Shown here one piece after another: positions 1 through 38,452 of a stretch of DNA of 64,000 nucleotides. The position numbers and the translations under genes were made by a program. How positions within the stretch are numbered: position 1 is the stretch's first letter; each line of letters starts with the position of its first letter. The notes below the pieces were generated by a model that was not told the DNA's origin, did no database searches, and was given only the letters and a program-made list of their open reading frames with translations. The stretch is from Azolla caroliniana (taxonomy: Eukaryota > Plantae > Polypodiophyta), in contig JBHGNT010000001.1 in assembly GCA_043228905.1 (NCBI GenBank), positions 15,004,001-15,068,000 of the forward strand, read 5' to 3'.

Positions 1-2129
1 AGTTTAGAGCGTTCCGAACTGCTATATGTACACGGGAGAATACGCAGTCGTTTTTCGACTTACAGTCAATGCTCCTTATAGAGGAGAACCACACGGGTGC
101 GTCGACAAGCACGCATGCTGACAGCAAGATTCTGTACACGGAGAGAGATAGGCCCCGTGGTCATGGTGGACGAGGCGAGTCGGTACGCAATGGACGCGAC
201 CGACGGGATCAAGGAAGAACGCATCGAAGTGATGCCGATAGCAATTCCGGACCCTCCGGAAACAGAGGGAGTCGAGGCGACGAGGACTGGCAAGGGAAAC
301 CCGCCGCGGAATGCTAGTATTGTGGTAAGAAAGGCCACAGGGAGAGCGAGTGCTGGAAAAATCGCTCTAATTCGGAGAGAACCAGGTCCAGATCCGGTTC
401 CGGACAGATCGATAAAGGAAATCGGTAGCCATCGCATTACGCTGAAGAATCCGAAAAAGCCGAAAAAGGGTCAGTCTTCGTGACGAGACACGAAGCAAAC
501 TCAATGAAGAAGATCACCCCGAAGTTAGAGTAGGTGTGGTACGTTGACTCCGGCGCGTCAAACTACATGACGTGCCACAAGGAGTGGTTCTCGTACCTGG
601 AAAAACCGATGCAACCGGGAGTAGTCGCAACCGGAGACGACACTCCGCATCCGATCACAAATGTCCGTGAAGTTCCCTTGAGCCATGTCGGGCAGAAAGG
701 GGAACTTATGAATTTGCTACACGTCCCCACAATCACGAAGAATCTGCTGTCGGTCGGGCAGATCGTCGACCAGGGGATACAAGTCCGGTTTACGCATCTT
801 GGGTGCTTCATCGAGGAAGAAGGTCGAGTTATTGCGCAGGGGCGCAGAGACGGGAGGATATTTATCCTCGACTCTAGTGACGGTGGCACCGCAATATTCA
901 CGAAAGGACAAAAAGTCAAGTCGGACATCGCCTTATGGCACAAGTGGATAGGCCACATCAACTATCAACGGCTTTAGGACTTGCAATCGAAACAGGTGGT
1001 ATTTGGATTGCCTAGATTTAGTGGCCGAGAGGAACAAATTTGTAAAGCCTACCAACTCCGGAAGCAACACCGATTTCCCTTCCCTAACGAGCATAATCGG
1101 AGCCGGAACAAGCTCGACTTGATACCTTCCGATGCATGGGGGCCGGCAAACAACGTTAGTCTTGGCGAGAGTCGATATTTCGTCTCCTTCATCGACGACT
1201 ATACGCGGCACACGTGGATCTACCTCATTGAGAAGAAGAGTGAAGTCTTCGACTGTTTCTGGGACCTTAAAGGGTTTGTGGAAACGAAAACAGGACGAAA
1301 GATCAAGTGCCTACGGTCAAATGGCGGAAAAGAGTACTTTTCTGGTCAATTCAACGGCTATTTGCAATAGATGGGAATTCGACACGAATTCAGTTGTAGA
1401 TACACGCCGGTGCAAAACGGCATGGCCGAGAGGAAGAATCGGTCGATTGTGGAAGCGGCGCGGGCAATGCTAGAAGAAAAGAGCATGCCCAAGTTCTATT
1501 CGACCGAGGCTGTACAAACCGCGGTATACATCCATAATCGGATCGGAGAAAAAGTGTCGCCGCATGAGTAGTATTTCAGAAGGAAGCTGAATCTACGACA
1601 CTTGAGAATTTTCAGTAGGATTGTGTATGTGCATATACCGAAGGAGAAAAGGAGGAAGTTGGACGCGAAAGCCGAGAAGTGTATCTTGGTCGGCTATTCG
1701 GACGAGCAGAAGGGTTATAAATGTTATAACCCACGCACTAAACAAGCGCACGAGAGCCGCGATGTTGTGTTTGACGAGTTTGTGTCCTGGTACTTGCTTC
1801 CGACTCCGGAACTCACCTCCAATCCGAGTTCTGATGATGAGGTCAGTGAGGCCGAGGTGCCTCCGGATGAGCCTGAAATCGGGACCCGCGAAGAGAGTCT
1901 GACTTTAGTTCGCTTAAGCGGACCGAATGTACGACTGAGTCGGTTCGACTAGTCCGATGAAGAGCCGGCGAGTAGTGGACACTCGACCGTGCATTCCCCG
2001 CGCAGGAAGCTGAGGAGACGGCTTACGCGCAAAGAAAAAGGGAAGAAGAAGGTGTCGGATTACGGCACGGATAGGAACGAGTTGGATCGACGCGAGTCCA
2101 ACTCTGAGGGAAGAGACGACGGGTCTTCG

Positions 2130-3664
2130 AGATCATCACGGATAGGAGATTGTTCTTCATCACGGATGTTAATCATCATCGTCATCCATGCCACCTCCTT
2201 TCGTCGATGCTCCCGTTCCAATCGCTCGAAGTGGAGTTGGGTGCTGAGCTGGTCATCGTCTAATCGTTCCAACAACCTTTAGACAACAGCCAATTGCTCT
2301 CCGGGCAAGGACAGAAAGTCATCCGACAACTCCTGAATGGAGACAATTCTTTCTACATCCATCTTCTAGAAGTGGTCGTCGTCTTTTCTCCTATTCTCGA
2401 CGTCCATTCGTAGGACCTATAATTTGTCTGCTTGTTGCGTCCACATTGTCAACCATTCTACCGAGCTTTCGTCAATCATCCTCTTCGTCCGTTCTTTCCA
2501 TGCCAGCAAAATGTCCCGGATCTGGTTTAGCCCTAGCTTGGACATGTCCTCTGTGGCTTGCTTTTCCTCCTTCAATTTCTTTATTAGAGCCACGGTCGCC
2601 TGGGCCTGCACCCTACATTCCAACAATTGGGTCTGATAGGTTGTCTACATGCTATCTGGAGCCATTTTTGCTCGTTCAACCTCTTGGTAATGCTGTCGGT
2701 TGCATGTTTGTTTACGTACCCGTATTTAACATTTAAATACGTATAGTACCTCATCATTTGTATAGTACGTACTATACCTCAATGTTGTTTAGTCAAATAT
2801 CATGTACATTTGTCCAATACGGTATTTAACGTATTTATAAAAAAACATGTATATTACGTATTTATAAAGAAAATGTAAGTAAAACCCTAACAAAAAACAA
2901 AAGAAAAAAAGATTTTAGTGAAAAAGAAGCCAAAGGAAGGAAGAAAGAAGAATAGACGAGACGACGATGAAGAAGATGAAGAAGAAGAAGAGAGAAAAGA
3001 AGACATAAACCTGTCCTGAGTGTGATAATCGCAGAAGATAGAAGAAGAAGAAGAAGAAGAAGAAGAAAACGAAGAAAAAAGAAACCTATCATGAGTGTGA
3101 TAATCGTAGACGATTCCTCAATCTATGAAGGCATAATTGTAAATAATTACAATTTGAAGTAGAACATCGTGATACACACTTACACTGATTTTTAGAATAA
3201 GGGAATGTCGACATCCATATTACTACAAGTATTTTAGGATGTGAAATGTTCAAATGTCTTATATGTATTTTAGGATGTAGAACTATATTGTACATCACAA
3301 AATTGTGTAAACATAGATGTTTTTTACAATATTATCGAAATGTTTTAGAAAGGTAAATAATTTTCAAATTCTAGAAGTATTTAACATACTATACGTAAAA
3401 TACGTACTTTACGTACTTTACGTATTTTAAAAGTATTTAACATATTAAGAAAACATATTTAATGTATTTTTAAATTGGGAGATATTATACGGGTATTAAT
3501 ACATTAAATACGTATGGTATCTATACCGTACCTAACAACCTTGGTCGGTTGAGCTCCATCCTTTTGCTTGCCGCCTCCTCAAGCAGCTTTGCCGACTCGA
3601 CCGCCTTTGGTCATTCCTCTGCCAACACATCCGCTTTCTTTGCTACAGTAGCCCAGAGTTCTCC
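2130..3664 (-). pseudogene. Fragment of a charged, probably coiled-coil ORF (likely TE-derived), split by a MITE
   Basis: Minus-strand ORF pieces 2060-2275, 2417-2626 and ~3550-3664 are E/K/R/L-rich and continue across the MITE; no family recognised. Confidence 0.35.
2703..3543. mobile_element. Non-autonomous hAT-type DNA transposon (MITE), 841 bp
   Basis: 8-bp TSD GTCGGTTG (2695-2702 and 3544-3551); imperfect terminal inverted repeats CATGTTTGTTTACGTAC / CAAGGTTGTTAGGTAC (rc); many subterminal TACGTA motifs; AT-rich and non-coding. Confidence 0.8.
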
Positions 3665-5224
3665 ATGGGGTTTGTGGCCTCCAAGTCCGACTCTTCGTTG
3701 TTCATCCGGCAAGGTCTGGACGGTCCGGTTTGCATCTTGTTGTATGTTGATGATCTAGTCATCACCAGACCCGGACTCGATGAAATCAACCGAGTCAAGT
3801 CCCAACTGTTGGATGCATTTGAGATGAAGGACCTAGGGGACCTTCACTAATTCCTTGGGATCGAGGTAATCCGAAACCCCGACGGCATATTGCTCTCACA
3901 AAGACACTATGTGTTGAATATGTTGTACAAGTTCAGCATGAAGGAATGCCGACTGATCTCCACACCCCTGTTCCGGAACCAGAAGCTTCGTCCCAACTCT
4001 AGACCGACCTGCGATGAGAAGCGGTTTCGACAAATCATCCAACCCAACATCAGTTATCCGGTCGGTGTGATCAGCCAATATATGCAGAAGCAGACTGTGG
4101 AGCACCTTTTGTGTGCACATCGAATTTTGCGATATGTGAGGGGCACGAAGAACTGAGGACTGTTATACCAGCATGGTATAACCGAGGAGCTAGTCGGCTA
4201 CACCGATGCCGACTGGGTTGGCGATGCATCGGATCGTCAATCCACCTCCTACTATATGTTTTCCCTTGGCAGCGCGGCTGTTGCGTGGAGCAGCAACAAG
4301 CAGCCAACAGTGGCCCTTCCGAGCACTGAGGTTGAATACCGAGGCGCTACTGTTGCCACCTGTGAAGTCATTTGGCTTCGGCGACTACTACAAGACCTGC
4401 ATATCGAGGTGCCGACCCCGATCCTGATCTACTGCGACACCATAAGCAGCATGTAGCTCGCCACGAACCCCGTATTCCATGCTCGCACAAAGCACATAGA
4501 AGTGCACTACCACTTCATGCGTGAGCGTGTCCTGAGCAGTGAAGTCGAACGTTGATATGTTTATAAGGATCGGCAAGTTGCCGACATCTTCACCAAACCG
4601 CTTGGATTGGAAAAGTTGCAGCACTTCACCAAAATGCTTGGTGTTTGGCATCTGGACGTGCCACACTTGAGGGGGAGAATGGGCAAAGACACTAGAACGG
4701 GCAAACGCAAAGAAACTGCCGGTTGTGCCGGTGAGGGAAGAACCAGCAGCGGCGGTAGAGTGAAGAAGGCCATAGCCGACCAGAAGAAGAAGGCCAAGGC
4801 CTGGACATGGTCCGATGTGGTGACGGGCCTAGAACCGGAAGACGAATCGGGAGTGACCGATTTGGACAAGAGCTAGAATGAATCGGAGACAGCTGATTTG
4901 TTTTAACAAACGGATTCGGAAGAACCGGATCAATTCAAGGAAAAGAGGATGAGAAGGCAGCGAAAGTCGACGCTAACACGAAGGAATTGGCGAATCGGCA
5001 AGCGCCGAAGTCACAACAGCGAGGGAGCTGAATTGGGCCTGTTGAGTAGACAAGCCGATCGAGGAGGTCGAGGTGTGCAATATCAAAAGGGTCGCAGCAA
5101 ACGGAACCGGACCAGACGAGGAGCACGAGCGAGACAGAGTGACGCCAGAAGTAGCCGGGTGGAAGGACCTAGTGCCATGGAGACGGACACTATGATCTGA
5201 CCTCAAGTTGAGCTTGAGGGGGAG

Positions 5225-5610
5225 TGTTGAGCGGTAAGCTTAACCGGATCCGGATCGGCTGAATAAGCCTGAGCCGGATCGGTGAGCAGGTGAGCAAGCG
5301 AGGCGGTAAGCAAGTGAGCCGGTTAGCCGGATCAAGCAGTAACCAGAAGCCTAGTAGCAACCTAGACTACCTGGTAGTTAATGTCTCGTAGTTAGTGTCA
5401 GACGCTCGTGTGAGCATTGAAGTACACAGTACCTCTTAGGATGTGTATGAATAGTGTTGTTGAGCACGTTGTATGTATAGAGCTTTTTATAGAGTTGTTG
5501 ATAATAGATTTAAGTTGTTCTGTTGTTTCTCTGTCTCTTCTGCCTATTAATCTCTCTCTCTCTCTCTCTCTGTTGCTATCCGGCTAAGCCGGTTGTCTAA
5601 CGCTTCCGCA
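5225..5610 (+). repeat. 3' LTR of copia-1
   Basis: Starts TGTTGAG directly after the PPT and ends CTTCCGCA, like the related LTRs at 56121-56556 and 57338-57776. Confidence 0.8.
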
Positions 5611-5960
5611 CCTTCGTTTTCATGTACCATGTATTGATTTTCGATTTCAGGTGGCTCGTTCCTCCATATCCTAGAGTGTTTAACTTTACAAAGTTTTGCG
5701 AGATGAAGGAGGACTTTAACAACATATATAGTCTATCGTTAGAGGGTATTCACCTTGTTGTTCTAACATATAAATTGATTAGTGATGTCGATTGGTTGTC
5801 AGTTTATAAAGTTCCCAGAGTGAAAGGTAAGGTGAAGATCAAGAATGTACGACCGGAGCTGTATGACAACTGCATGAGGCTCCACTAGAAAGTACATCAA
5901 GAGATCCCGGCCAACAACAAGTTGTCTGGTCCATTTGCCAGACCTTTTGCATACGAGTAT

Positions 5961-6444
5961 TGTGCGGAATAACGCTCGTCCACAACCGAGCCTCAAACAC
6001 TTAATGGAAGAACAAATGAAAAAATAGACGACATAGGATGTTTACGTGGAAAACCCTAACAGGGAAAAACCACGGGAATCCATAGACTCCAACTATCACT
6101 ATACAAGAAGAAGGTACAACAGAAAACTCAAAGGCAATGACCTCGAGTTCTATATCTTCGCCAACTAGCAATGACAATAGAAACTCAATCTCTCACTCAC
6201 TATACAATAGAATGATAATAACTCTAGCTCTAAAGTGATTGCCCTAAGTCATATTATACTTATATGACTTTGAGACTATTTACCAATATAGCCTTTACAA
6301 GCAGACTAGAAACATATTTGCAAATATGTCCCTGGATGGATACCTTCCGGTCCGGTCCGGTTGTTGCATCTGGTCTGGTTCCTTCCTTCAGCTCGTCCAA
6401 TCTGGGTCCTTCGATTCTCATCCGGAGGGATCGAATTCCCAACA
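5961..6444 (-). repeat. Copia LTR (copia-5 family) with adjacent PPT remnant
   Basis: The rc starts TGTTGGGAATTCGATCCC, ends TTATTCCGCACA and is preceded by AAAGGGGCAATT; it is homologous to 55191-55705. Confidence 0.75.
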
Positions 6445-7944: not shown

Positions 7945-8392
7945 TGTTACCGATTAGGAACACGGTCTACGGTCAATCCTTCGACCTAGACCTCCAAGTG
8001 ACTTGTGACAACGAACGGTAGCGTCTGTGCGTAATACGTAGGGGAATGTTCCCCGTAACCTAGCAGCGTATAAGGGAGACGGCTACAACAAAGCTCCTTA
8101 ACAGTGGCTACACACTCAATGTTGCTTACTTCTACACTCTCAGGTGTTATAGACACATAGTAGATTAGCCGTAACTATACACAGATATCAAAGAAAATAG
8201 AATTCTATTATGATACGCTTCTTTACATTCCCAAAATTACACGCTGCCTCTATCAGAGGTTTTTTGCCCTTCATATATGTAGGGTGTTTTAGCCGTTCAC
8301 GCTTCCCGCGTGAACCGTTACATGTGTTACAATCTTATACTATTTCCTATTCCTGCGCTCTTGTTCGTCGGTTACTATCCCGCCGGATAACA
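7945..8392 (-). repeat. 3' LTR of gypsy-A
   Basis: Direct repeat of 14629-15077, lying downstream of integrase in element sense. Confidence 0.93.
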
Positions 8393-8394
8393 CG

Positions 8395-8435
8395 TGGTAC
8401 GCCTATGGGATAGTGCCACGGCACGTCGGACCCAT
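8395..8435 (-). other. tRNA-3'-end-like structured motif at the PPT position (copy A)
   Basis: Element sense reads ATGGG TCCGAC GTGC CGTG GCAC TAT CCCAT AGGCGT A CCA, 2 nt before the 3' LTR; there is no purine tract. Confidence 0.8.
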
Positions 8436-8439
8436 CTCG

Positions 8440-9200
8440 TTAATCTTCTTCCAAAATGGCCCGGATGTTTGGCTCTGCTACGGTGTCCGCATCCAGGGAC
8501 GACGTAGGGCCCGTAGGTGCCTCGTGGTCTGGTTGCCCTGTTTGGTCGGGAGGGCTTCTCCTGGTGTCGCGATCATCTTGTGTGGGCGGTCCGGCTTCTG
8601 TGGGCTCTTCATGGGCTAGGGGGTTGGGCTCAGCCGTCGGCAAGCTTGCGGTCGGTCCCGGCTCTGTCTCCTCCGTCACTTGCTCCGTAGTGTCGGTCGT
8701 CTTTGTACGCTCTGGGGAGTGGGGTTGCGGTTCCGCTTGGTCCGCAACGATCTCCGTGTGGTCGGCCGATAGCGTATGCTCCGGTAGATGGGGTTCCTCT
8801 TGGGCAATGGTTTCGGTGTTTGGTAATGTGGGGGACCCCGCTCGTCATTCCGTGTTGTTCACCGTAGTTGTAATCTATGGTGACCTAGCTTGAGGTTCCA
8901 CTTCTTCGGCAGTGTTTGGAATTGGTGTCGCGACGGATTCCTCATTTGTTCGCGTGCTGCTGGCTTGTTTGATCTGGTGAAACAGATCCTCCTGGCGTTC
9001 ACCAAAATCGTCTAATAGTTGTGCGAGTTCTTCGGAATGCTGGTCCGCTAGCGCACGATAGTCCTGCGCTAGGCCCTCGCGTATTGCCGCAATGCTCTCC
9101 TCATTGAGTTTATAGAAGCCGCGGCCGTGTTTTCGCCGGTTCTCCCAGTCTGCACGATACGCATGCAATTCTGCCGCTTGGGTTGCCCACGCCATCCATC
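8440..9200 (-). pseudogene. Remnant of an extra sense ORF between integrase and the 3' LTR of gypsy-A
   Basis: WATQAAELHAYRADWENRRK..YKLNEESIA..L.QDYRAL aligns by eye with 27930-28200 of gypsy-B. Confidence 0.7.
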
Positions 9201-9319
9201 CATCCTTTGTCCATCCTTTTTACATTATGATACAAGTGGGGCCGTCCACTTACGCCGCAGGTTCTCCGGCTTTGTCCTGTCCGGCGGTGAGTGGGTTGGG
9301 TGGCGTAGGGCCCAGGTAA

Positions 9320-12300
9320 GGTTTAAGGCGGAACCCATTCACCTTTTATCGTAAGACTTCCCTGGCCAGCGTGCCTTGTTCCGCTCCTAATATCCAGTAT
9401 GGGCATGTCCAGTGGAATCGTAACTTCCCTAGCATATGGCCCATGCGGGTTTGGAAAACCAGTACTGCTCGACCGACCGCGAAATCCTTTTCCCGTGCGT
9501 TCCGATGTCGATCCACAAACACTTTACACCGTTGTTGTTCCTGCTCCAACACAACCATGCTGTGTATGCGTTTTTCGCCGAGTTCGAGTAGCTGGTGGAG
9601 CTGTACCTCCTCCAACTTGGCTTCCGATAGTTGGTCTCGTACCTGAATGCGTAAACTGGGTATCTGAAACTCTACCGGCATCACGGCCTCCAGCCCAAAC
9701 GCTAGCCGAAACAATGTGCATTGTATGCTTGTTTTGTAGCTGGTTCTATACGCCCATAACGCACTCTATAATTTGGTATCCCAGTCCGTTCTATTCTCAT
9801 TGACGATTCTCTTTAAGATGGTTTACAACGTCTTGTTGGTGGATTCCGCTAACCCATTCGCCTGTGGATAATATGGCGTACTCTTCTTGTGGACTATAGC
9901 GTAATGATGTGTTAGTTCTCGAAGAACCGTATTGAGAAAGTGGCTCCCTTGGTCACTGATAAGCTCAATCGGACAGCCGAACCGATACCAAATGTGCTCG
10001 TAAAGGAATCTCGCTATGACGGCCACCGTATTTTCTCGTAGTGCCTTCGCTTCTACCCACTTGGTGCAATAATCTGTGGCTACCAATATGTATTTATTGC
10101 CCGTATGGGCCGTTGACGGTGTGAAGGGGCCCACAAAATCCAATCCCCACTTTTGGAAGGGGTATAACGGTAATACGGGTTGGTGTGGCATCCTTTCACC
10201 CTTCGTGGGCTGGCCCATCCGTTCACACAAATCCCACTTTCTATAATACTCGTATGCGTCCTTCTGTGTAGTCGGCCACCATATTTTCCGGGCTGTAACA
10301 TCGCTCGCGTAATGGCCGCCTGCCGTGCCGTAGTGAGCCTCCCGTAAGACTGCTTCTTTGTCATCCTAACGTACCCCATGTCGCCAAATGCCATCACTTC
10401 CTTTGTGATATAAAATTCCTTCTACCAGGCAGAAGTTACGGCTTCGGACAGCTAATTGTTTCTTCTCGTCCGTGCGTAATTGTGGTGGAGGTAGTCCCAT
10501 AGTAAAAAAGTATGTCATTTCCATAAGCCACCGGTCCGGAAAGGTCAATTCCGTTCTTTCTGCTAGTGTTGCAACCTGCTGAATGTCGGCGTCCGGAAAG
10601 TCGTCGTCGTCCTTCTGTACTGTTTCTCCATTATCGAGTCTGCTCAAAACATCTGCCATTGCGTGTTGCGTCCCCGGGCGGTGCTGAATTACAAAATCAA
10701 AATTCTTGAAGCAGCAGCATCCATCGCGCCAATTTCCCTGTCAGTGCTTGTTTCTCCACCAAATACAACAGTGCTAAATGTCCACGTAGAACGTGAATTT
10801 CCTCCCTAACTGATAATGCCGGAATTTATTGATGCTATAGATCATCCCTAACGCCTCCCGCTCTGTTGTGGAATAGTTACGCTCTGCCGTGGATAATTTG
10901 CGACTAGCGTAATACACCGGCTGGTACCAATTTGGTTCGGTGAGCTGCATTAGCGCACTTCCTATTGCTATGTCCGAGGCGTCTACGAACACGTGGAATG
11001 GCTTCGCCCAAACTGGTGGCCGTACGACGAGTGCCTGTGTGAGCATTATCTTAAGCGCATCATAGGCCTTGTCCTCCGTTGCGGTCCATTGGAAGGGAGT
11101 CTGATGCACGACAGCATGTAATGGTGTGGCGAAGTTCGCCAAGTATCGTATGATCCGACTATGTCGTCGTATTTGTCCTAAACACCGGCTAAGTGATTTC
11201 ACGTTTGTCGGAGTTTTGGCTTGCGTAATCGTGGAGATCTTGTTCGGATCGACCGCTATTCCATCCTTGCTGATTATATGGCCTAGGAGAGTCCCGCTGG
11301 TCACGCCGAAGGCACATTTCACGGGATTCAGGCTTAAGCGTGCGGTGTGGCAACGTTCCAAACACAATTGCAGATGCGTAAAATGGTCGATTGTTTTCCC
11401 ATATATCGCAAAGTCGTCTAAAAAAACTTGCATGAACGCCGGAATATATTCCCCAAAGATCTCCGTAATTGTCCGTTGAAATGTCGCCGACGCCGTCTTT
11501 AGCCCGAACATCATGACGACGGCCACATAGACTCCCCAGTCCGTGACAAATGTTGTCTTCTCTTGGTCATCGGGATGCATGCATACCTGGTTATACCCAC
11601 TAAAGCCATCTATAAAATTGTACATGTCATGTCTTGCGACGGCGTCCAGTACGCTATCGGTGAATGGTAAAGGGAATGCGTCCGTAATGGTTACGGCATT
11701 TAATTTTCGGTAATCCACGCATGCACGTATTTTACCATTTTTCTTTGGAACGACTACTATCGGGCTTAACCCTGTGGCTTGTTTAACTGGCCGTATGAAT
11801 CCTGCCTTTAGGAGTTTGTCAATTTCTTCTTTTACGGGGGTTGCGTAGTTCGGGTTCATGCGGTAGTGGAGCTGCTGAACGGGTTTTGCGTCGGTTGCTA
11901 AATTGATCTTATGTTGTAGAACTTCGGATCTAACCCCTTCATGTGCTCGTGAGCCTAGGCGAACACATATTTATATTTCTTGAGTAGTTCGATCATTGCG
12001 TCTCTCTGGGACGGCCTTAATTCCTTTGCAATGGAGAGAAAACAGGGTTCTGACGTCATACCCACGTTTACTTCTTCCAGGGCGGAGGCGGTGACTCGCC
12101 GTGAAATTTCCATTTCCCTCTCGAATGTTGCCCGTGCTCTGCTTAGTTCCAATATTGACTCCAGATTTGGTTCATACGCCTCATCGTTGAGGATAGTGGC
12201 CGTGGCATATTTTGTCGTGGTTGCGATGACGTCGATTTCGAACAACGGAATAATCCAAGGGTGCTCGTCCTGGTATGCCTCTAATTCTGCATCCTCCACC

Positions 12301-14560
12301 CCAGCCAACATATTTATATCTTCCACGTACAATGGTGTTATACCCTTGGATTGTGTCGCGGTTCCGTCTTTAGGTACGCGAACCTTGGTGTGTCCGTGTC
12401 GGAAACTGATACACATGTGTTGCCAGCTCTGCTTGATATCTGCTGCCCGAAGCCACGTTCTGCCTAGTAGGACAGGGTACGCCCCTCGGGCATCCAAGGC
12501 GAGGACTACCACCGAGATGTCGAAGCGATGTCCTCCCACGATAATTCCTATCTTGTGTATCAACCACAATGGTCGTACTGAGCGGATATCTGCCATACGG
12601 ATCTAGAATGGGCAAGCCTCCCATTTTGAAATGCCTAACTTCTCGCATGTTTTCGCGCTAATTACATTAACGCCCAAGACGCCATCGATTACGCATCCTG
12701 GGATTTCCTGTCCGTATAAATCAATGTAATAGCCGGGTTGTGGTGATCCACTACAGATGGTCCGTCGCTAACGTCCATGTGGTTCATAGCAACGCTCACC
12801 CCGGGTATGCCCGTCACCCGTTCTTCCATGGTCTGGCGGAAGTGTGGGACTAGTTGTAGCAGCTTCTCCATGGTTAATGTTATCTTGCACCTTGCTAGTG
12901 CTTGCCAAATGGGGTCTGGGGCTGGTCATTTGTCCTCCACTTGCTCCATTGTATTTGCGGACTCCTTTTGCATGCGCTCTGTATTTGTCGCATTTGCTTT
13001 TTCAACCCATGGCTGGGCTTGTCGTCGTATCTCATCTTGCGTGGCCCAATCAACCATTTTTGTTTGCTGGCGTGTCGTGACTTGCTGCACTTCCACCATA
13101 ATCGTATTGATGGCGGGCCCCTTGCCCTTGCGTACTGGGCATTGCGTGGCATAATGTCTGGGCTGCTGACAAACAAAACAATGGATGCTCGATTCGCCCT
13201 TCTCGGCTCCTGGTGGTGTGTGCCGATCCCCTGCTGCGACTTGCTCCTCATGGTCTGGCCTCGTTTGTCGGAGCGTACGCGGTGGTTGCTGTTGTTCCCA
13301 GCGTGGTTCTTGGTTTCGCTCATCGCCCGAGCTTTTGTCATATCGTCGGTGGTCCTGATATTGCTGTTGCTTCCCACGATAACCATTCAAGCTGCCACAT
13401 TTGTTTGTCGGCCGGTCATTCTCATAGTGCCGGCCCCGTTTAGCATAATTGGGGGGACCACGGTAGTCCTCATCCTCTGGCTCGTCTTCCTCGGAATCGT
13501 TGTGATTCTGGCGATTCCGATAGTGCTGGTCGTCACGTGGGTTGCGATCCACATACCGTGGTCGGTCTTCTTGCCTCCTTTGTTCAGTACGACATGGGGG
13601 ACGTTGTGTGTCCATGCTGCGTACTCTGGGAGCAGCTCTGTTCAGCATATTGTATTCGCATTGTTCGATTGTGTGAGCCTTCAAGTGGCAGATTGGGCAG
13701 TGGATTCACATGTTGGAGTCCACTACGGAATGCCCCAAGTTCAAGCAAATCGTGCACTGGATTGCTTAACGAAACTGTCGTTCCTCATCTTGAGGTAACG
13801 CTTGTCGTAATGAGGACATAGAAAACCTTTCCTCTTCGTCATCCAGCTCGAGCTATAACACTCGTTCAATGACCATATCCATTGTTTCCCCTTTCACGTT
13901 ATTGTTGTTGAGCGTTGTCCGTATGGGTCGGCGTAATGTTGCCAAAAATGTCCCCGAGCCTCGTCCTCCGCATGGCTCCGTTGTAGTTTCCGTCGTAAAT
14001 TTTGGAAACGTAAGCTGAAGTTTGCGATCTTCTCGGTCGGCAGCTGCTTAATTGTGTAGAACTGTCCGAGGATTTCTCGTTGTGGAACCCTCCGATGGAA
14101 GAACCGCAAAAAGGCGGACTGCAGCTGGTTGAAGGTCGTGATTGCTGGCAAATCCATCAGTGAATGCCAAAATGCCGCTCGCCCATCCAATGTTAACCCG
14201 AACTCCGTCATTTTGGACTAGTGCGCTACCGCCTTAGAAAGGCTCTGCGCCATGTGGTTTGCATTCTAGACATTGAGGAACATGCGAATATGAGTTGCGG
14301 CGTCGGTTTCATCGTTAAAGCGGGGATAGGCAAAGGCCATGATCGGGGTTGCGGCAGGTCGGGAAAGACCACAATGCTGTTGTGGTGAGCGTGCTCCCCG
14401 CGTATCGTTGAGGTATTTGGAGAGCGGAAAATCACCTTTGTGATCACAACAGGTACTGTTGAGGTCGCTGAGGCGAGGCTTCTGCCGTGCGCGGTCCTCT
14501 GCCTAGCGTGTGATAAACCTTGTGATTGGCCGGTCTGATCATGTTGGTTCTCTAGGGCGT
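9320..14560 (-). pseudogene. gag-pol of gypsy-A (fragmented)
   Basis: Gag EFGLTLDGRAAFW; zinc knuckle CFVCQQPRHYATQC; protease VIDG..GVNVI (~12660-12690); RT CVDYRKLN and FLDD (10774-11859); RNase H DASDIAIG and NYSTTERE; integrase KWGLDFVGP and PQANGLAE; GPY/F-like C-terminal motif. Confidence 0.92.
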
Positions 14561-14610
14561 CTATGGCTAAATATCCATTCGTTGTTGTTCGCCCGTGAGA
14601 AGACACAGAT

Positions 14611-14624
14611 CATCAAGCGTGCCA
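14611..14624 (-). promoter_or_regulatory. Primer-binding site of gypsy-A (tRNA-Arg-like)
   Basis: TGGCACGCTTGATG lies 4 nt inside the 5' LTR and resembles the TGGCACGCC-type PBS of non-chromoviral plant Gypsy elements. The tRNA identity is from memory. Confidence 0.7.
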
Positions 14625-14628
14625 AAAG

Positions 14629-15077
14629 TGTTACCGATTAGGAACATGGTCTACGGTTAGTCCTTCGACCTAGACCTCCAAGTGACTGTGTGACAATGAA
14701 CGGTAGCGTCTGTACGTAATACATAGGGGAATGTTCCCCGTAACCTAGCAGCGTATAAGGAAGATGGCTACAACCGAGCTCCTTAACAGTGGCTACACAC
14801 TCACCGTTGCTTACTTCTACACTCTCAGGTGTTACAAACACACAGTAGATTAGCCGTAGCTATACACAGATATTAGAGAAGATAGAATTCTATTACGATA
14901 TGCTTCTTTACATTCCCAAAATGACACGTTGCCTCTATCAGAGGTTTTCAGCCCTTTATATACGCATGGTCTTTTAGCCGTTCATGCTTCCCGTGTGAAC
15001 CGTTAGATGCGTTACAATCTTATACTATTTCCTATTCCTGCGCTCTTGTCCATCGGTTACTATTCCGGCGAACAACA
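14629..15077 (-). repeat. 5' LTR of gypsy-A
   Basis: Direct repeat of 7945-8392, followed in element sense by CTTT and the PBS. Confidence 0.93.
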
Positions 15078-15555
15078 AGGACAAGGTCGGGGAAGAAGAG
15101 GCCAATTGAGCCAAGGACAACACAACCAAGAGCAACCTCAAAAACACAACTTCTACTAACGACAAGACGTCTCGAACACGCTAAACGGAGCATCTGGAAG
15201 AAGGGGGAGCAATCGGGCCGGACCCATCCGACAAAACAATCTCGCTCAATGCGGATACTGTGGAAAAATGAATTGGCCTCCACAAGCCGATAACTCACAA
15301 ACTACGCCTCCAACTCCGACTATGATATTGTGGCGGAATGTTTGTGATAAGGCACATAGCGCACTCGATGACAACCTCAAACCTGACCAACACCTCCAAA
15401 GCAGAAGATGAATGGTTTGTCGACTTAAGCCCATCAAACCACATGACATCCCATGAAGATTGGTTCAAGGAGCTACGAAAGCCTGAATGACCCGGCTATG
15501 TGGAAATTGGGGATGACACAATTCACCCCATTCAGTATATCGACAATGTCCCATT

Positions 15556-16050
15556 TGTCAGGAAACAGGTCCCTCCGGATGGGAAGTGAGAAGAACCGTG
15601 TTGATGAGCAACTTGGCCGAGGCCGAAACCGGAAATCGTGGAGATAGCCAAAACAGAAGGCTAAACTTGTAAATAGTCGAAAGGGTACATTAGTATATAA
15701 GTACTTAGGGCAATCATGTTAGTAATGTGTGTTATTTGTAAAGTTATTGTCGACGAGGTTGTTGCCTCTGTAACTGTGAGTGTGAGTGGAAGCGTGTGAG
15801 CTCCATAGCCGCCTGTTGGCGAAATAGGATCTTGAGGTCGTTGCCTCTAAGATCTTTGATTGTATTCCTTTCTCTCATAGTGTTCTGTTTCGGAGTTTGT
15901 GGACTCCATGTGGTTTTTTCCCAGTTCGGGTTTCCACGTTAAAATCTCTGTCATTCTTAGTTTCTGTATTCTATTTTTTCCTTTTCCATTAGATTGACTA
16001 TTATTCCGCACATGTACAACCGGTTGTGGCCGGCAACGATTTGCACTTCA
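15556..16050 (+). mobile_element. Solo LTR inserted in the copia-2 protease region
   Basis: TGTCAGG...ACTTCA ends; 5-bp TSD CCATT (15551-15555 and 16051-16055); internal similarity to copia-5-type LTRs; TATA ~15695. Confidence 0.85.
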
Positions 16051-16991
16051 CCATTTGGGGAAGAAGGTAACAAAACATATATCAAGAACTTTTTGCATGT
16101 TCATACAATAACAAAGAACTTGGTCTCAGTTGGCCAGATAGTCGAACAAGGCATGCAAGTCCGCTTCAACAACGGAGGATGCTTCATCGAAAAAGAAGGC
16201 TGACTTATCGCTAGGAGTCGGAGAGAAGGTCGGATGTTCATCCGCAACTCTCACTAGATGAACTCGGCAATGTATGCCAAGGGCCAGAGAGCCAACGCCA
16301 ACATAGAGCTCTGGCACAAGAGGATAGGCGACATCAATCTCCAAAAGCTCAAGGGAATACAGTTGAAATGAGCTGTCACCAGAGTCCCGAGCGTCACCAA
16401 AAAGGAAATTGTAGGCATGTGGAAGCTTGTCAATTTGGCAAACAGCACCGACAACCATTTCCAAAGGAGAGGAACACAAGCAAAGGGATCCTGGATGTAA
16501 TACACTCAGATGTATGGGGACCAGCCTAGATGACAACATTCAGTGGTTGCTGCTTCTACGTAACGTTCATCGATGACTTCTCTAGACATACCTGAATCTA
16601 CCCCATGTGGCAGAAGTGCGAAGTGCTCATACACTTCCAAAGGTTCAAAAACGAAGTCGAAAAGGTAACCGATCGGCATGTCCGATGCCTTCGATTGGAT
16701 GGAGGCAAGAAGTACTTCTACAATGCCTTTACAACATATCTTCGACAAGAAGGAATTTGGCGGGAGTTTACCTACCGACACACACCTCAGTAGAATGGAG
16801 TGGCAGAACGCAAGAATCGGCACATACTCAAGGTGGCAAGGGCAATAATGAATGAGAAACATCTAGCAAAGTCATATTGGGTTGACGTTGTCATAGTGTA
16901 CTTTGTACACTACGTAAAATATATGTGGAGTACCCGATTGACTAAGTATAAAGAAATAGGAGAAAATAGTACAATAATTATGTTATATGCA

Positions 16992-17129: not shown

Positions 17130-19568
17130 TCATTTTCTCATGTACAAACAAACCACACATCTTGGAAATGCACCAAGAAACTTAGGAAAAAATGGTTTGA
17201 TAAAGAATGTTGTGAAGCTCGAAAGTCCCTTATGGTTTTGGATGTAGTTAAGGATAAAGAGAATTACCAAAAGCACTTGCATGAGTATAAAAGGCTTATT
17301 CAATGAAAGAGAAGAATATGGGAAGTTACTCCACAATTTATCCAAATGCAAGAGAAAGCACATGCATGTACTAAATTTTGGGGAAATCTAAAGGGGAAAT
17401 GTGTTGAGAGTTATGATGACTGAACTCTTCACGACTTGTCTATGCATTGCAAGAATTTATATGAGTTATGTCTTGCTAGAAAGATGATGTGTTATGGTCC
17501 TCTTTCACATATGCCTCCTTTCTTTACAATTGAAGATATATGCATAGAACTTAAGAAATTGGGCTCTCGAAAGGCAAGCGATCTTCAATGTATATAGGTT
17601 GAAATGCTCAAATGGACGGGAAAGGAAGCACATGTATGGATAAACGATATGTTTAAGATGCATTGTAACATGGTATGATGTACGATTGGACTACAAATTG
17701 GATCAAACCTTTACATAAAGGTGGAAATGTAAATAATGTAAACAACTATCGTACCATCATGGTTGACTCATTAATGGCAAAACTGTTTGGATGTACAATG
17801 CAATCAAAGATAAGTGTATGGACTGAAAAAAATGGTAAGAGAGGTTATGGACAAGCTGGTTTTCGAAAACACCATAGCATCATTGATCACCTTATTACCC
17901 TTCGAGTATTAATGGAGGAAATCCGCCTTAGAGGTAAAGGTTTATATTGTTGCTTTGTACAGTTCAAGAAAGCTTTTGATGTGGTACCTCGGGAGCATAT
18001 TTGGAGGAGAATGGAAGAACTTGAGGTGCCAAGTGAATATATGCTTACAATTTCCCGAATTTATGAGAAGGTTATATGTTGTGTGTGCATGAGAGATAAA
18101 CTTTCAAATTTTTTCAAAAGCACTATTGGTATTAAGCAAGGACGCCCACTCTCACCAACACTATTTGGTCTATGCATTGATGAATTGGAAGAAATGGTTA
18201 CCAAGTTTGCAAAGGAAGAATGTGTTGAAGAAGTTGCCATTGGGAATGTTGTGATTATGCTTTTGCTATATGCAGGTGATGGAGTTCTTTTTGCAAATAC
18301 TTTAGGAGATGCACAAAAGCTTATGAAGGCATTGGAATTTTTTTGCATGCATACTAAAATAATTGTGTCAATAGCTCTAAAACAAAGATTATGCTTGTGG
18401 AGAGCCGAAAAAGATATAAACCATGCATTATGTACAACAATGAGCCACTTGAATGTGGGAAAGCTTCAAATATCTTGGCCTTGAAGTTCCTTCAAATCAT
18501 AGATGGAATGAATGTGCTACACGCCACTTAGAGGCGGGTAAGCCAACATACTATGCATTTGAGAACACACGCAATCTTTGAGATATTAAGTGTTGGGTCC
18601 TCAAGAAATATCTTTTCGACACTTTGGTGACACCAGTTCTTATCTATGGGGTGGAAGTATGGGGCGGTGGCATCCCTAAATCTATGTGGAAAGAGTTTGA
18701 AAATGTCCAAAAACATTTTCTTACAAAGTTTCTCCAAGTTAAGAATTAAATGCCCTACACTCTCCTCCTCCTTGAGACAGGATCGCTTCCCTTTGAGATC
18801 ATGGCCATGGAAAGGGTTGTTGAATACATGCTTCAGGTTCAAAAAAACCCCCTCACATCGATTTCCTAGAATTGCGTGGGAAGCAAGCAAAAAGATCCAA
18901 AAGATGCATAAAAGCAAAATTTTGTGTTCCGGTTGGATGCAAGCTATAGAAAAATGGTTTGGTAGATGGGATGAGAGACACTTGCTTCATGATGCATCAT
19001 TAGATTCCTCTGTAAATGAGGCCTTTTTGCAAAGCCAATGTATCATGACATGGGACAAATGTGGAGGCTCACGCTTCACACATTATACCACACATGTTGC
19101 ACGTAACCACAAAACCATATTCTTTGCGGAATGGGGAAATCGTACACATCGATACATGTTATAGCCCATACCGTTATCTGCCATTCGAACCATTGCTTCC
19201 ATGTGACTTAGCTCACATGCATTACGATGTGAGACAGGATGTTGGGGCACAAGTGATGAGAGTGATCGGCTATGCACACTTTGCCCTAAACAAGTTCGCG
19301 AGTTTGAGTATCACACTTTGATACAATGCTCTGCCTTTGATCATATTCGACCATGCTTTCCACATCTCTTTGATCGAGCCCAATCCTTGCATGAATTTCT
19401 TTCACAACCACAATGTGCACTCTCGATTGCAACATTCATTGGTAAAGTTCTTGAACATCGAGAGTCACTACTCACTTTCACACGTATCACATGAAATGTA
19501 ATATGGTTAGTCTCATAGGTCATATTTGACCTCCGAAGACAATAATATAATCTATCTATCTATCTATC
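17130..19568 (+). mobile_element. 5'-truncated non-LTR retrotransposon (LINE, RTE/RTEX-like)
   Basis: RT motifs NYRTIMV, QAGFRK, FKKAFD, GIKQG.PLSPTLF and LLYAGD (17675-18484); C-terminal RLCTLC..EYH..IQC zinc-finger-like motif; 3' tail of (CTAT)n. The clade call is tentative. Confidence 0.85.
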
Positions 19569-20264
19569 TCTCTCTACAAACACACACAATTCTTCTACTG
19601 CACAGAATCCATCTGATTCTTTACAGTAGTGCTTCTTGAGTTGATTGTGTTTAGATCTTCTATGTGGTATGCTTCTTGAGCATGTAGCACATGGCGGCCT
19701 AATAGGTAAAGAAATTCTTGTCTTGGATAATTAACCATATAGCCTCCACCAAAGGGTGTCTTATGGTGGATGATGTCGTTGTTGTGATAGAATTCGATAG
19801 ATGTTTTGTTATTTGTGAGTGTATTTATGGATATAATGTTTTTGCTATGTTAGGCATATAATGAGCTTCATTTCAATGAAGTTGCCATTAGAAAGTTCAA
19901 GGTGGGTACTCATGTGTCCAAGGTCATATTTCACTTTGTTATTCCCAAATGTCACTACAAAGGGATTTTCTAAGGTTTTATAATCTTTACGACATTCAAA
20001 CCTTGATGTGAGGTGATATGTGGCTAATTTTTCAACGATCCATATTGAACTAGGAGAGTGATCAAATGAATTAATGTCCATAGATGCAATGAAAAACTCT
20101 TTATTATCCTCATCGAAATTGTGTTGACTATGACATTTGCCATTATTTTGGTCATACTAATTATATGATACATTGTGTAAGCGTGTTCTTGTTTATATAT
20201 GTCAAAGTTAGCTTGCGGAATCGTAGACATGACCAGTTCAGCTGGATAGCAACAGAAAACAGAA

Positions 20265-25124: not shown

Positions 25125-25889
25125 ATGGAAAGGGTTGTTGAATACGTGCTTAAGGTTCAAAAAAGTCCCTCATCGACTTCCTAGAATTGCATGGGAAGCA
25201 ACCAAAAACATCCAAAACATGCATAAAAGCAAAATTTTGTGTTCCGGTTGGATGCAAGATATAGAAAAATGGTTTGGTAGATGGAATACGAGACAGTTGC
25301 TTCATGATGCATCATTAGATTTCTCAGTAAATGAGGCCTTTTTGCAACACCAATGTATCATGACATGGGACAAATGTGGAGGCTCACGCTTCACACATTA
25401 TACAACACATGTTGCACCTAACTACAAAACCATATTCGTTGCGGAACGGGGAAATCATACACATCGATACATGTTAGAGCCCATACGGTTATCTACCATT
25501 CGAACCACTGCATCCATGCGACTTAGTTCACATGCATTGCAATGTGAGACAAGGAATTGGGGCACAAGTGATGAGAGTGGTCGGCTATGCACACTTTGAC
25601 CTAAACAAGTTCGCAAGTCTGAGTATCACACTTTGATACAATGCTCTGCCTTTGATCATATTCGACCATGCTTTCCACATCTCTTCGACCGAGCCGAATT
25701 CTTGCATGAATTCCTCTCACAACCACAATGTGCACTCTCAATTGCAACATTTCTTGGTAAAGTTCTTGAACATCGAGAGTCACTACTCAGTCTTACACGT
25801 ATCACGTGAAATATAATGTTTTTTGTCTCATAGGTCGTATTTGACCTCCGAAGACGATAATATAATCTATTTATCTATCTATCTATCTC
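25125..25889 (+). mobile_element. 3' fragment of the same LINE family as 17130-19568
   Basis: Closely matches 18807-19568, including the (CTAT)n tail. Confidence 0.9.
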
Positions 25890-28708
25890 TCCTCACTCAC
25901 CTCGCCATCACAGACGCTCTACTACTCAAACCTTGCCTCTGAAACGTTCCCCTTGGTCATCTCAATCCATCCCCGAAGAGCTGACGATTTACATCTCCCC
26001 AACCCTATGGCGGTGGCTCCACGACAAAGGCCTTGTAGGCTACATCCGAGTGGCAAAGGCACCGCCTCACCGTAACGCACAAGAGATGGCAAGGAAACTA
26101 AATATCGACACCATTATAAATTCCAACATCATGAAGAAGTTGGGCCTGTCCGGAGATGGGGAACGCCCCTTCACGATCCCTCCAGCAAGGGAGCTCGAGC
26201 ACTACTTTGGGGAATACTCCATCTCGGCCAAAACCTACAAGACGCGGGATGCGCCTGATCCGTTCTTTCAAGAAGTCGCAAAGTTCTTACTCAAAGTAGG
26301 TTGCGTACACACCAATACGTATGGGATGCCTAAACAGAAAGCGGGCATCGTCATCGTGACTTTCAAAGGACAGGGCATAGATTGGTGAGTTACAACAAGG
26401 TCGGTGTAGCGAGAAGGATTTGATGCGTTCCAGGTCAGGAAGAAACTTCGCCCCATCATCCAAGGGTATTTAACAATATTGTTTCTGCCCCAGGCCCTCC
26501 CCGCCCCTATAATGGCCCGATCGATGGTCACGCCACGACCAACGGAACGGAAAGTCGCCAAACTCGCCACAACTGAGCGGGAGGAGGACGAAAATACACA
26601 GGTTACGGAACCGGTAGCCTCAGAGGCCGAAAAACAACCTAACCCCGCCCCCTGAGTTGAAACGTAGCCTGATGTAGTTACATTGGTCAAACAAGACCAT
26701 GCCCCAAATAGCGTGAAGACCAGACGCCGCTGACTAGACCAGAAGGATGGTCGCAGACTTGTTAAGGATATGGCTACAAAAACTGAGACCCCCGCCATAA
26801 TCGGGGCTGTGACGACACTAGAAGTGATTCCGCACCCACGGCCAATCTTCACCAGACAATCAGAATAAGGTAAGGGCGTATTCACATATGAAGTGGAAGT
26901 ATTGAGCTACCCAGATATTCCAGACACGTCACATGAATTTGGGGCTCTCTTTGCAACTCATGGAGCTCCTAGTTACATAGCAGATCAAGGTCTCCCAACG
27001 CATGGTAGAAGAGCACGCCATACGCCAAATGATCGAATGCGCATTGACTCAAATAGTTGTCTAGGGTTGGATGAAAGAGAAACGCCATCGTTGGCCAGAT
27101 GGGCATCGAACTACCCCCACTAAATATGGCCTTAGTCGGAGTACATAGGGAGCTTTGTGGTGGTTATCATTGGCGCCAAGGATATTACGACAAAAAACAA
27201 AAATCAATGGAAGACTATTAAGATAACACAATAACAACTGGAAAAGACACAACAGAGGATTTCGGAACTCGAAAATGGCGTACCAACATGGGCGGAACCT
27301 ACTCCCACCCCCGCTTCCCAGACATCTGAACTTCAATCGCTATGGGAAGAGGGGGAAGCCCAAGCGGCGATCACGGCCAAAGCAAAGCGCGCCACAAAGC
27401 TGGCCGAAATGGAAATTGAATGCCTCCGGTCAAACTTCAACAATACTTGGACAGAGAGGCGGATATCTGGGCCAAGGCACACAAGACCGTAAAAGCATTG
27501 AAGGAGAAACTGGACACAAAGATCGTTGCGTACGCGTTAACAACGAGGGAACTGAACAAGTAGAAGGAGGAGCTGGTCCGGAAAGAAGGCATCATCACAT
27601 CAATGCAAGAGCCAGTGTAGAAGAAGAAGGCATGGTACGATGAAGAGATCGAGAACCAACAACAGGTAATTTGAAATGTCGAGATATGCCTCAATAACGA
27701 GATGGGCAGACTGGAGGCACTCCACGAGAAGGAGTCGCATATTTGGTAGGGAGTAAAAACTCATTACGAAGAAGCAGCGATTGCATATCAACGACAAATT
27801 GCATACCTCCAAAATGCTCTTGATGACTTACAAGCACGCACGAACCTTAGCATGGAGCGCATTCCCACACTCCTCGAAACAAAGCAAGACTGGTTTACGG
27901 CCCAGTTACAACGGCCCTAAATAGAGTTTGGGCTGGGTGGGCGGCACAAGCGGTTGAGCTCCACACATACTAGGCCGATTGGGAGAACCGCCGAAAGGAA
28001 GGGAAAGGCTCCTACAAATTGAGCAAGGAAAGCATTGCTATGGTCCGAGAAGACCTTACCCAAGACTACCAAGCCCTAGTCGACTGCCACACCGAGGAGA
28101 TAACACATTTGCTAAGCGCTTTCGGTGATAGCCACATTGATACCTCAATCCCACTACAAGCTATCAAAGCAAAACAAAGGAGAACAGAGGAGGAAAGAGC
28201 CATGGCCACATCCATCCGGACAGTGACCCCGTGGATTAGAACAAAGGTACGCAAGAAAATGACGACACCCCAGAGGGTACTACGACACAGTAACCTCTAC
28301 TATACCCCCGCAGGCACCAACACGGATGATGACGTATGGAGGCAATCACGGGAAACACTACGGGAGTTTCCCACCAATGACCAACATGAGGACACCACAG
28401 AGCAGGCACCAACACAAGCAGTGGTGTCGGAATCAACAAAGCGTGGACACCTATTAGGACCTGTCACCACGGAACCAAGCCCACAGTTGGAGTCCGACCT
28501 CGCCGAACCAATTAACGTCGCGGCAACTCTCGTCCTGACTAGTAGGGGCGATCACCTAAAACCCAATCTCCTTGATATTTTCGACGAGAAATAAAGGGTG
28601 ATAGTGGGTCCGACTTGCTCCGACCCTATCCCACAGGCGTACCATGTGTTGGTTGCCTCCAATGACCAAGTGTGAAACGCCGAAGTGGAGAGGACAAAGC
28701 GAAGCGGA
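25890..28708 (+). mobile_element. 3' part of a Gypsy element (gypsy-B): long decayed extra ORF, tRNA-like motif and start of the 3' LTR (TGTTGG at 28647)
   Basis: ORF pieces 25933-28594 with a coiled-coil-like middle; homologous to the gypsy-A extra ORF; same terminal motif. Confidence 0.7.
28604..28644 (+). other. tRNA-3'-end-like motif at the PPT position (copy B)
   Basis: GTGGG TCCGAC TTGC TCCG ACCC TAT CCCAC AGGCGT A CCA, followed by TG and then TGTTGG. Confidence 0.75.
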
Positions 28709-36060: not shown

Positions 36061-36959
36061 TACGAGCACTTTCTGTTGTAACCTCCGTCTGGCGAAGATC
36101 GCGAGAACGAAGTCGTTCCCTCTATGTTTCCACTTTGTATTTCCTCTCATATAGTGATAGTTGGAGTCCGTGGGCTCCTGTGGTTTTTCTCGTTTAGGGT
36201 TTTCCACGTAAACATCTTGTGTCATCTCGTTTTAGTCTGTTCTCTTCTATTCCTTGTTGAAGACTCGGTTGTGGCTGAGTGCTATTTCCGCACAAACTGG
36301 TATCAGAGTGAACAACACAAGAAATGGTAGAGTCGCTCGGCAGCATGTTCAAGCTCACCGGCTCCAACTACTCACTCTGGAAGTCGAGGATGAGGGACAT
36401 TCTCGTGGTCAACGATCTTTGGTTGCCGGTACAGTTCGAGGACAAGAAACTGGACAAGATCAATGTTGTTACCGTACGAGATGTACGGGTGATTGATAAG
36501 TGTGATAAGTGAGGGTGAAAGATGTAATGTTTTCATATGTATGTGTAATGTTATACGATTATGAGTGTGAATGTAAGTGTGAGTGTGGTTGATACAAAGA
36601 GGTGCGAGTGAGTGACTAGGTGTGAATGCCAAGGGAGTTTGCACCCTTGTGTATCTACCCCTTTGTACCTATTTAAGCCCTCATTGGGGAATGAATGAAT
36701 AGAATGATCAGTTCTCTCTCTCTCTCTCTCTCTCCCCCTTAACGTTGAACCCCCTTGGGAGGGGGGTGGAGCCATTCTAGGCACCACCCCGCAATGCTTC
36801 TCAATGCTTGTTAACATCTTCATCATCTCTCTCACCATCATACCATTCATCATGTCACTATTACACCATGTTTATCTTTATCATCAGTCATCATCATTAT
36901 CATAAATATTAACCCTAACCCTAAAACCGACAGTCGAAGAAAGATTATGACCAAGGCAT

Positions 36960-36999
36960 GTGGGATCAACGTGCAAGGCACTATCCCACAGGCGTGCCA
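36960..36999 (+). other. tRNA-3'-end-like motif (copy C1)
   Basis: GTGGG ATCAAC GTGC AAG GCAC TAT CCCAC AGGCGT G CCA, 5 nt before the LTR. Confidence 0.78.
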
Positions 37000-37204
37000 T
37001 ATTGTGTTACCATACGAGATGTACGGGTGATTGATAAGTGTGATAAGTGAGTGTGAAAGATGTAATATGTTGATATGTATGTGTAATGTTATACGATTAT
37101 GAGTGTGAATGTAACTGTGAGTGTGGTTGATACAAAGAGGGATGAGGATGAATGGTAATGGTGTAATAGTGAAAATGATGGAGAGTATAATGGTGAGAAA
37201 GAAA

Positions 37205-38412: not shown

Positions 38413-38452
38413 TGGTATGCCCATCGGAGAGTGCCTTGCACGTCGATCCCAC
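38413..38452 (-). other. tRNA-3'-end-like motif (copy C3)
   Basis: The rc reads GTGGG ATCGAC GTGC AAG GCAC TCT CCGAT GGGCAT A CCA; it lies downstream of the minus-strand RT-RH fragment. Confidence 0.72.

Follow-up and report, generated by a model that had tools for sequence, protein, structure and literature searches.

A copy of the tRNA-Arg(UCU) 3' end in the place of the polypurine tract: a candidate plus-strand origin in a clade of Ty3/gypsy retrotransposons

The window, that is the whole stretch of 64,000 nucleotides from Azolla caroliniana analysed here, was found by self-comparison to be a nest of LTR retrotransposons. One of them, element A, is a 7.1-kb Ty3/gypsy element delimited by its target site duplication, its LTR pair and the order of its Pfam domains. 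Its features are listed below.

7945-15077, minus strand: element A, Ty3/gypsy LTR retrotransposon
7945-8392, minus strand: 3' LTR of element A (TGTT...AACA), then the GTCCT target duplication
8393-8394, minus strand: 2-nt spacer from CCA to the LTR, CG in the sense of the element, then the TG of the LTR
8395-8435, minus strand: module of 41 nt ending in CCA, a copy of the tRNA-Arg(UCU) 3' end
8440-8679, minus strand: remnant of the last ORF, with its stop codon at 8442-8440, 4 nt before the module
9823-10230, minus strand: integrase core, decayed
10774-11859, minus strand: RT-RNase H, decayed
13894-14211, minus strand: gag, decayed (the three coding regions span 9823-14211)
14608-14624, minus strand: primer-binding site (PBS), starting with TGG 4 nt past the 5' LTR, decayed
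14629-15077, minus strand: 5' LTR of element A, preceded by the GTCCT target duplication

The two LTRs (about 448 bp, 91% identical in the window self-comparison) start with TGTT and end with AACA, and the 5-bp duplication GTCCT flanks the element on both sides. The Pfam domains Retrotrans_gag, RVT_1, RT_RNaseH_2 and rve were detected in gypsy order on the minus strand, so that 7945-8392 is the 3' LTR. Given the LTRs, the target duplication and the orientation of gag-pol, the module occupies the position of the polypurine tract (PPT), and it fills the whole non-coding gap ahead of U3. At the opposite end, the PBS is the complement of the tRNA-Arg(UCU) 3' end except for three transitions in the first 15 positions.

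A pattern search of the window returned five copies of the motif, at 8395-8435 (minus), 28604-28644 (plus), 36960-36999 (plus), 38413-38452 (minus) and 42678-42717 (plus), all of them downstream of pol; in shuffled sequence the same search gave 0 matches, and none is expected. Copies C, D and E are 90-95% identical and represent one family, and the LTRs of A and B are unrelated; the window therefore holds three independent families. The features of the four other copies are as follows.

28019-28594, plus strand: ORF upstream of the family B module, with its stop codon at 28592-28594, ending 9 nt before the module
28604-28646, plus strand: family B module and 2-nt spacer TG, followed by an LTR fragment (TGTTGG) from 28647
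36931-37004, plus strand: conserved block of copy C (family C) and 5-nt spacer, the block consisting of a purine-rich ORF end and the module (36960-36999)
38408-38452, minus strand: module of copy D (38413-38452) and 5-nt spacer, the LTR starting at 38407 and going left
42651-42722, plus strand: block of copy E (from about 42651), with the module at 42678-42717 and a 5-nt spacer, followed by the LTR at 42723-43199

No PPT abuts the 3' LTR at any motif copy, runs of purines within 30 nt upstream of it reaching 3-4 nt at most, whereas in both copia elements of the window a run of seven purines (G5AG) directly abuts the TG of the LTR and is accompanied by a standard tRNA-iMet PBS. Purine-rich runs of 9-20 nt are present 4-25 nt upstream of the module in all families; those of A and B belong to the last ORF, as its coding end. 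The preliminary description of this DNA had claimed that element A has no purine tract before its 3' LTR, that gag-pol fixes its orientation and that five motif copies are distributed over three families, and each of these points was reproduced here, coordinates included. The orientations of B and D could likewise be confirmed, by a homologue of the post-integrase ORF of A at 27935-28270 (plus strand) for B and by the RT of the same element at 41284-40588 (minus strand) for D. The statement that the motif ends 2 nt before the LTR stands for A and B but not for C, D and E, where the gap between CCA and the LTR is 5 nt (TATTG).

Several structural observations concern the surroundings of these copies. 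The LTR of family B is interrupted at 28785 by insertion of a copia element (28791-34283, target duplication CCAAG) and has no partner LTR in the window. This copia element and a second one at 45210-50731 are 83% identical, lie on opposite strands and have 300-bp LTRs; the second retains an intact 897-aa ORF at 46843-49536, minus strand. Copy C is followed by an LTR start at 37005 and directly preceded by an LTR end (36466-36929), so that 36466-37140 reads as an LTR end, 2 nt, the module block, 5 nt and the start of another LTR, and lacks a PBS. The arrangement resembles an LTR-LTR junction that would have kept a copy of the plus-strand primer segment. Its surroundings are scrambled, with an inverted LTR end at 37141-37200, and plant telomere-like repeats of the CCCTAA type are found at 36905-36928, at the end of the LTR copy. 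The 3' end of element D (interior, module and LTR start, 38246-38810) is repeated in inverted orientation at 42321-42884 with 95% identity, where the 5' part of D was expected, giving a head-to-head structure that is bounded on each side by an LTR end; the interior of D includes a tandem array with a 104-bp period (39257-40046). A (CT)n microsatellite inside the family C LTR differs greatly in length between 42975-43030 and 36715-36735, and contigs break there. Finally, two 770-bp direct repeats from another element (18807-19575 and 25125-25890), 92% identical and 6.3 kb apart, show no obvious TG...CA ends or PBS at their aligned edges.

To identify the corresponding tRNA, public metagenome contigs were scanned for the T-arm/acceptor string, which yielded 50 loci. 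In 14 of these the match coincides with 73-nt tRNA-Arg(tct) genes called by ARAGORN, several of which are tandemly arrayed; the remaining loci mostly contained prokaryote-type tRNA-Arg(gcg) or tRNA-Arg(tcg). Two metagenome contigs of eukaryotic origin (L016, 4294-5395, and L030, 9117-10218) bear tandem arrays of five tRNA-Arg(tct) genes, several of them degraded by transitions. An identical tRNA-Arg(tct) gene was found in five metagenome loci (e.g. L031:782-854:+), followed by T-runs and located on ORF-poor contigs; these genes look eukaryote-type, and their setting is that expected of nuclear genes. The tRNA-Arg(UCU) 3' end given in the preliminary description agrees with these five genes, and its reading of the motif as T-stem, T-loop, acceptor strand and CCA with an inserted hairpin is upheld by the alignment, with a loss of one base.

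More precisely, the module copies positions 49-76 of tRNA-Arg(UCU), namely the T-stem, the start of the T-loop, the second T-stem strand, the acceptor 3' strand, the discriminator base and CCA. When aligned to tRNA-Arg(UCU) with its CCA, the modules of the window carry 14-15 inserted bases, which form a small hairpin next to A58, and have lost one C at the stem junction. The T-stem 5' strand and the T-loop start match the tRNA at nine of ten positions in D and E and at nine of nine in the fern element L057; the T-stem 3' strand CCCAC is also identical to the tRNA, and the tail made of acceptor 3' strand, discriminator and CCA matches at ten of ten positions in C. In family B the likeness extends four bases further 5', to position 45. 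The decayed PBS of A and the tail of the related element L001 independently indicate the same tRNA tail with both Cs. The tRNA tail is matched perfectly and without interruption over only 8-10 nt in the families of the window and the fern. The lost C has another effect, as it lets the tail of the window families (8399-8435, 28604-28640, 36960-36995 and 42678-42713) pair with 10 contiguous bases of the tRNA-Arg(UCU) 5' strand; the same strand pairs over 7 contiguous bases with the tRNA's own 3' strand, over 7 with the L001 tail and over 4 with that of L057.

Folding of eight modules gave a nested hairpin without significant stability (z from -2.6 to +0.8). The closing pair of this hairpin is A-U in A and G-C in C, and L001 has a wholly different stem. 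No conserved partner for the acceptor 3' strand was found by folding, a 6-bp pairing being present in family C only. Rfam, used at a permissive threshold with the module of A and a fern copy, returned no tRNA match, and ARAGORN detected no complete tRNA in the window or in loci L001-L004. We thus rejected a tRNA gene, a SINE or a Helenus-type unit, as there is no complete cloverleaf and only positions 45/49-76 are represented. A PBS read on the wrong strand is excluded by the orientation of pol in A, B and D, and a coding motif by the ORFs of A and B, which stop before the module.

The named relatives of the RT of element A come from liverworts (Riccia) and a fern (Adiantum). The element L001, on a metagenome-assembly contig, has an RT 60% identical to that of A, LTRs 86% identical to each other and the target duplication TGTAG; its 3' LTR is preceded by the different-stem hairpin, a 14-nt tRNA-Arg(UCU) tail with CCA, AG and then TGTT. 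In Adiantum nelumboides, the elements L057 and L059 (RT 52-53% identical to A; target duplications GAAAT/GAAAC and CCAAG) have kept the T-stem and the T-loop start of the tRNA unchanged, with three bases inserted before position 58; the T-stem/acceptor part is slightly altered, and the last eight bases including CCA are retained and followed by AG and TGTT. The module is conserved in deep relatives, with the same CCA, 2 nt and TGTT in L001 and in the fern elements. This succession was observed in six independent LTR families (A, B, L001, L057/L059 and two seen as contig ends). Target duplications set the LTR edges in A, L001, L057 and L059 and directly adjoin the TGTT of their 5' LTRs. Letters identical to the tRNA persist in spite of unrelated LTRs and of RTs that are only 53-60% identical.

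A quick maximum-likelihood tree of RT sequences places A, L001, L057 and L059 in one fully supported clade. The module is found in each of the four clade members whose 3' junction is readable, and it is lacking before the 3' LTR of the outgroup L003, which lies outside the clade. As far as sampled, the module would be confined to this single RT clade, a boundary that is drawn from five readable junctions, L002, L004, L055, L056 and L060-L063 being without one. An nhmmer profile built from eight modules recovered no further copy in any fetched locus, and viral contigs scanned with the RT and the RT alignment gave no useful match. The L003 locus itself consists of outgroup gypsy copies head to head (1-6203 and 9992-16194), a 6.2-kb inverted duplication with 99.9% identity.

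The PBS is less constant than the module. It fits other tRNAs, probably other arginine isoacceptors, in L001, in both fern elements and in a relative within the window whose LTR is at about 60654-61100, while the module stays Arg(UCU)-like. Among the elements compared, PBS and module tail are mutually complementary in element A only. The window relative (60654-64000, plus strand) is a gypsy element that runs off the window; its PBS begins TGGCGACCACG, as in the fern elements and L003, and its gag has a long N-terminal extension.

Contigs from four DNA runs, representing four related organisms, were placed on window:42321-43162, and their depth is used qualitatively only. In run X1 the summed depth goes from about 2,000 in the interior to 40,000-125,000 in the module block, from about 42651, and then to about 20,000 in the LTR. 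The module block also rises in two of the three other runs, and X12 and X16 are higher still at the LTR start. At three sites where copy E departs from its sisters, most or nearly all X1 contigs have C; one of these sites is the T in the CTA end of copy E, where C is found in nearly all of them. Where contigs diverge just past the module, AG or TG comes next and is followed by the TGTT of other LTR families. From this depth profile and these continuations, the widely shared unit is the module and not the family C LTR.

With respect to known lineages, element A shows what defines Ty3/gypsy elements (LTRs with a target duplication, domain order and a PBS), except that the PPT is missing. Chromovirus lineages have a chromodomain at the C-terminus of the integrase and mostly a tRNA-Met PBS or self-priming. 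No chromodomain was found by Pfam in the post-integrase ORFs of A, B, L001, L056 and L061, which are decayed copies. The PBS types given for Tekay, Reina, CRM, Galadriel and Tcn1 in REXdb supplement 5 differ from those found here. The Tat/Ogre/Retand group, whose members use a tRNA-Arg PBS, carry a second, archaeal-type RNase H and average over 9-11 kb (REXdb), was considered and rejected: only RT_RNaseH/RT_RNaseH_2 was detected and A measures 7.1 kb.

The left edge of an LTR is where plus-strand DNA starts. Because this edge lies 2 nt from CCA and no purine tract is present, the primer is expected to end at CCA, and we consider that the module site is probably the plus-strand origin, a conclusion drawn from position. 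Its geometry mirrors that of a usual PBS (CA, 2 nt, TGG). We suggest that the module is a captured copy of the last ~28 nt of tRNA-Arg(UCU) which would serve this clade of gypsy elements as plus-strand origin. Our preferred candidate for the primer, put forward tentatively, is the host tRNA-Arg(UCU) itself, landing on an inverted second PBS in minus-strand DNA. Minus-strand DNA would be synthesised and the genomic RNA cleared by RNase H, after which the complement of the module would form this second site. The host tRNA, already handled by the chaperone and RT of the particle, would anneal to it through its 3' tail and, in some families, also through the 5' half of the T-arm, the hairpin being looped out beside m1A58, which is unpairable and would interrupt the tRNA duplex anyway. 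The natural CCA-3'OH would then be extended through the 2-nt spacer into U3, and the tRNA would be removed by RNase H as at the 5' end of the minus strand, the integrase trimming the 2 nt.

We favour the host tRNA over a primer made from the element's own RNA for four reasons: (i) a freshly captured perfect copy would work at once, (ii) the letters identical to the tRNA survive deep divergence, (iii) the insertions adjoin position 58 in two lineages and (iv) presumably no new enzyme specificity is required. Other points tell against it. The perfect match of the tail is short and a selected landing site could easily be longer; the loss of one base further in appears conserved; the hairpin of L001, with other stem letters, is easier to reconcile with a structural role for the RNA of the element itself. 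Two tRNA species per particle would be needed by members with a PBS for another tRNA, the spacer of family C is 5 nt and not 2, and a perfect competitor for the site exists in the genomic RNA.

The nearest competitor, which we regard as rather unlikely, is precisely that own-RNA primer. The hairpin would snap back and escape RNase H while the tail stays hybridised and is cut after CCA, RT then extending from it; RNase H would cut there since the duplex resembles the tRNA:PBS duplex that is processed in every cycle. The evidence of position and conservation applies equally to this scheme, which also accommodates the hairpin kept beside a tail of 10-14 nt with different stem letters and the imperfect but conserved identity with the tRNA. 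With such a primer, elements whose PBS fits another tRNA do without a second one, the element RNA is already in register, and the LTR-LTR-like junction at 36466-37140 carries the element's own version of the module, even if that junction sits in a scrambled region. The own-RNA scheme nevertheless demands, from the capture of the module onward, a new and precise RNase H specificity on a non-purine hybrid; the folding energies (z from -2.6 to +0.8) are no better than those of shuffles, and the T-loop/T-stem identity with the tRNA in the fern and window families is left unexplained.

An improbable possibility is that the module acts solely on genomic RNA, when the minus strand is initiated or strands are transferred, either by pairing with the PBS (5'-3' cyclisation or masking) or by replacing the 3' strand of the primer tRNA on the PBS and so bridging the genome ends. 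Bridges of this kind between 5' and 3' ends through a tRNA are documented (PMC5371799, PMC1635307), the PBS of element A is complementary to its module tail, and in the window families the tail can form 10 contiguous pairs with the tRNA 5' strand, where the tRNA's own 3' strand forms 7. The tail forms only 7 such pairs in L001 and 4 in the fern element, however, and L001 and both fern elements have a PBS for a different tRNA, without complementarity to the module. As the PBS tRNA varies and the module stays Arg(UCU)-like, PBS-module pairing is weakened as a general function. Such a role would furthermore leave the elements without any plus-strand primer and the fixed geometry of CCA, 2 nt and LTR unexplained.

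Still less probable in our view is that the purine-rich run upstream is the real PPT, the module being removed later or having another role at the RNA level. The presence of such runs (9-20 nt, 4-25 nt before the module) in all families would fit this, as would their inclusion in a block conserved between families, judged from loose contig ends before 42651. Against this, the run is the coding end of the last ORF in A and B, LTRs never contain the module, target duplications abut TGTT (A, L001, L057, L059), and the integrase would have to remove some 45-60 nt rather than 2. It seems very improbable that the module has no function and only survives, hitch-hiking in the lineage, from a single aberrant event of reverse transcription: capture of a primer tRNA sequence is plausible and old copies do show transition decay in the module, but it is kept at the same spot where LTRs and interiors have diverged beyond recognition, it is highly abundant in contigs of four related organisms, and an essential signal is missing from the place where it sits.

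Literature searches, the REXdb text and the supplements gave no description of a tRNA-sense module replacing the PPT, and known systems resemble it only in part. In plant RNA viruses with 3' tRNA-like structures and in the Mauriceville retroplasmid of Neurospora, a CCA-ended mimic marks the start of the polymerase or RT; these mimics form the RNA 3' terminus, imitate the whole acceptor arm and serve as template for initiation on the RNA itself. The module, in contrast, has no acceptor 5' strand, stands inside the element ahead of U3-R and would be or recruit a primer. Plus-strand priming from a PPT is established in retroviruses and LTR retrotransposons (reviewed for Ty3 in PMC5371799). The module shares with the PPT its site directly before U3, the relation of a few nt to the LTR edge and the presumed role at the plus-strand 5' end; it differs in being a tRNA 3'-end copy with CCA that is not purine-rich, and for this last reason the RNase H resistance of a purine hybrid cannot select it. 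In yeast Ty3, which has a bipartite PBS, and in Drosophila gypsy, which has a second tRNA-Lys site, the 3' site is the complement of the T-arm, D-arm or anticodon stem of the tRNA; it serves to start the minus strand on genomic RNA, and a normal PPT is retained (PMC5371799, PMC1635307). Here too the Ty3/gypsy genome has a tRNA-related element close to its 3' end besides the 5' PBS, but it has tRNA sense, with CCA next to U3 and no PPT, and it could pair only by strand swap with the tRNA 5' strand (10, 7 and 4 bases). Self-priming in Tf1/Tcn1 and TAR elements concerns the minus strand, the 5' end of the transcript folding onto the PBS (PMC6317226); as element RNA there replaces the standard primer, it is the nearest precedent for an own-RNA primer, the module being instead a tRNA mimic at the proposed plus-strand origin. 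Finally, Helenus TRIMs likewise have a tRNA-derived sequence built into an LTR retrotransposon, in their case a whole tRNA-like Pol III promoter unit within the LTR, with an ordinary PBS and PPT kept (PMC10886601).

If the proposal is true, these elements prime both DNA strands with tRNAs and dispense with the PPT and its special recognition by RNase H. To our knowledge, all retroviruses and LTR retrotransposons are assumed to prime the plus strand from an RNase H-resistant PPT, a feature on which annotation tools depend. LTR-element finders that demand a PPT will mis-score such elements in fern and bryophyte-type genomes. An abundant clade with a tRNA tail instead of a PPT would show that plus-strand priming can be re-invented. 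It would also offer a natural system for asking what RT and RNase H require of a plus-strand primer, and it would give new life to an old idea, in which replication origins are marked by tRNA-like tags ending in CCA.
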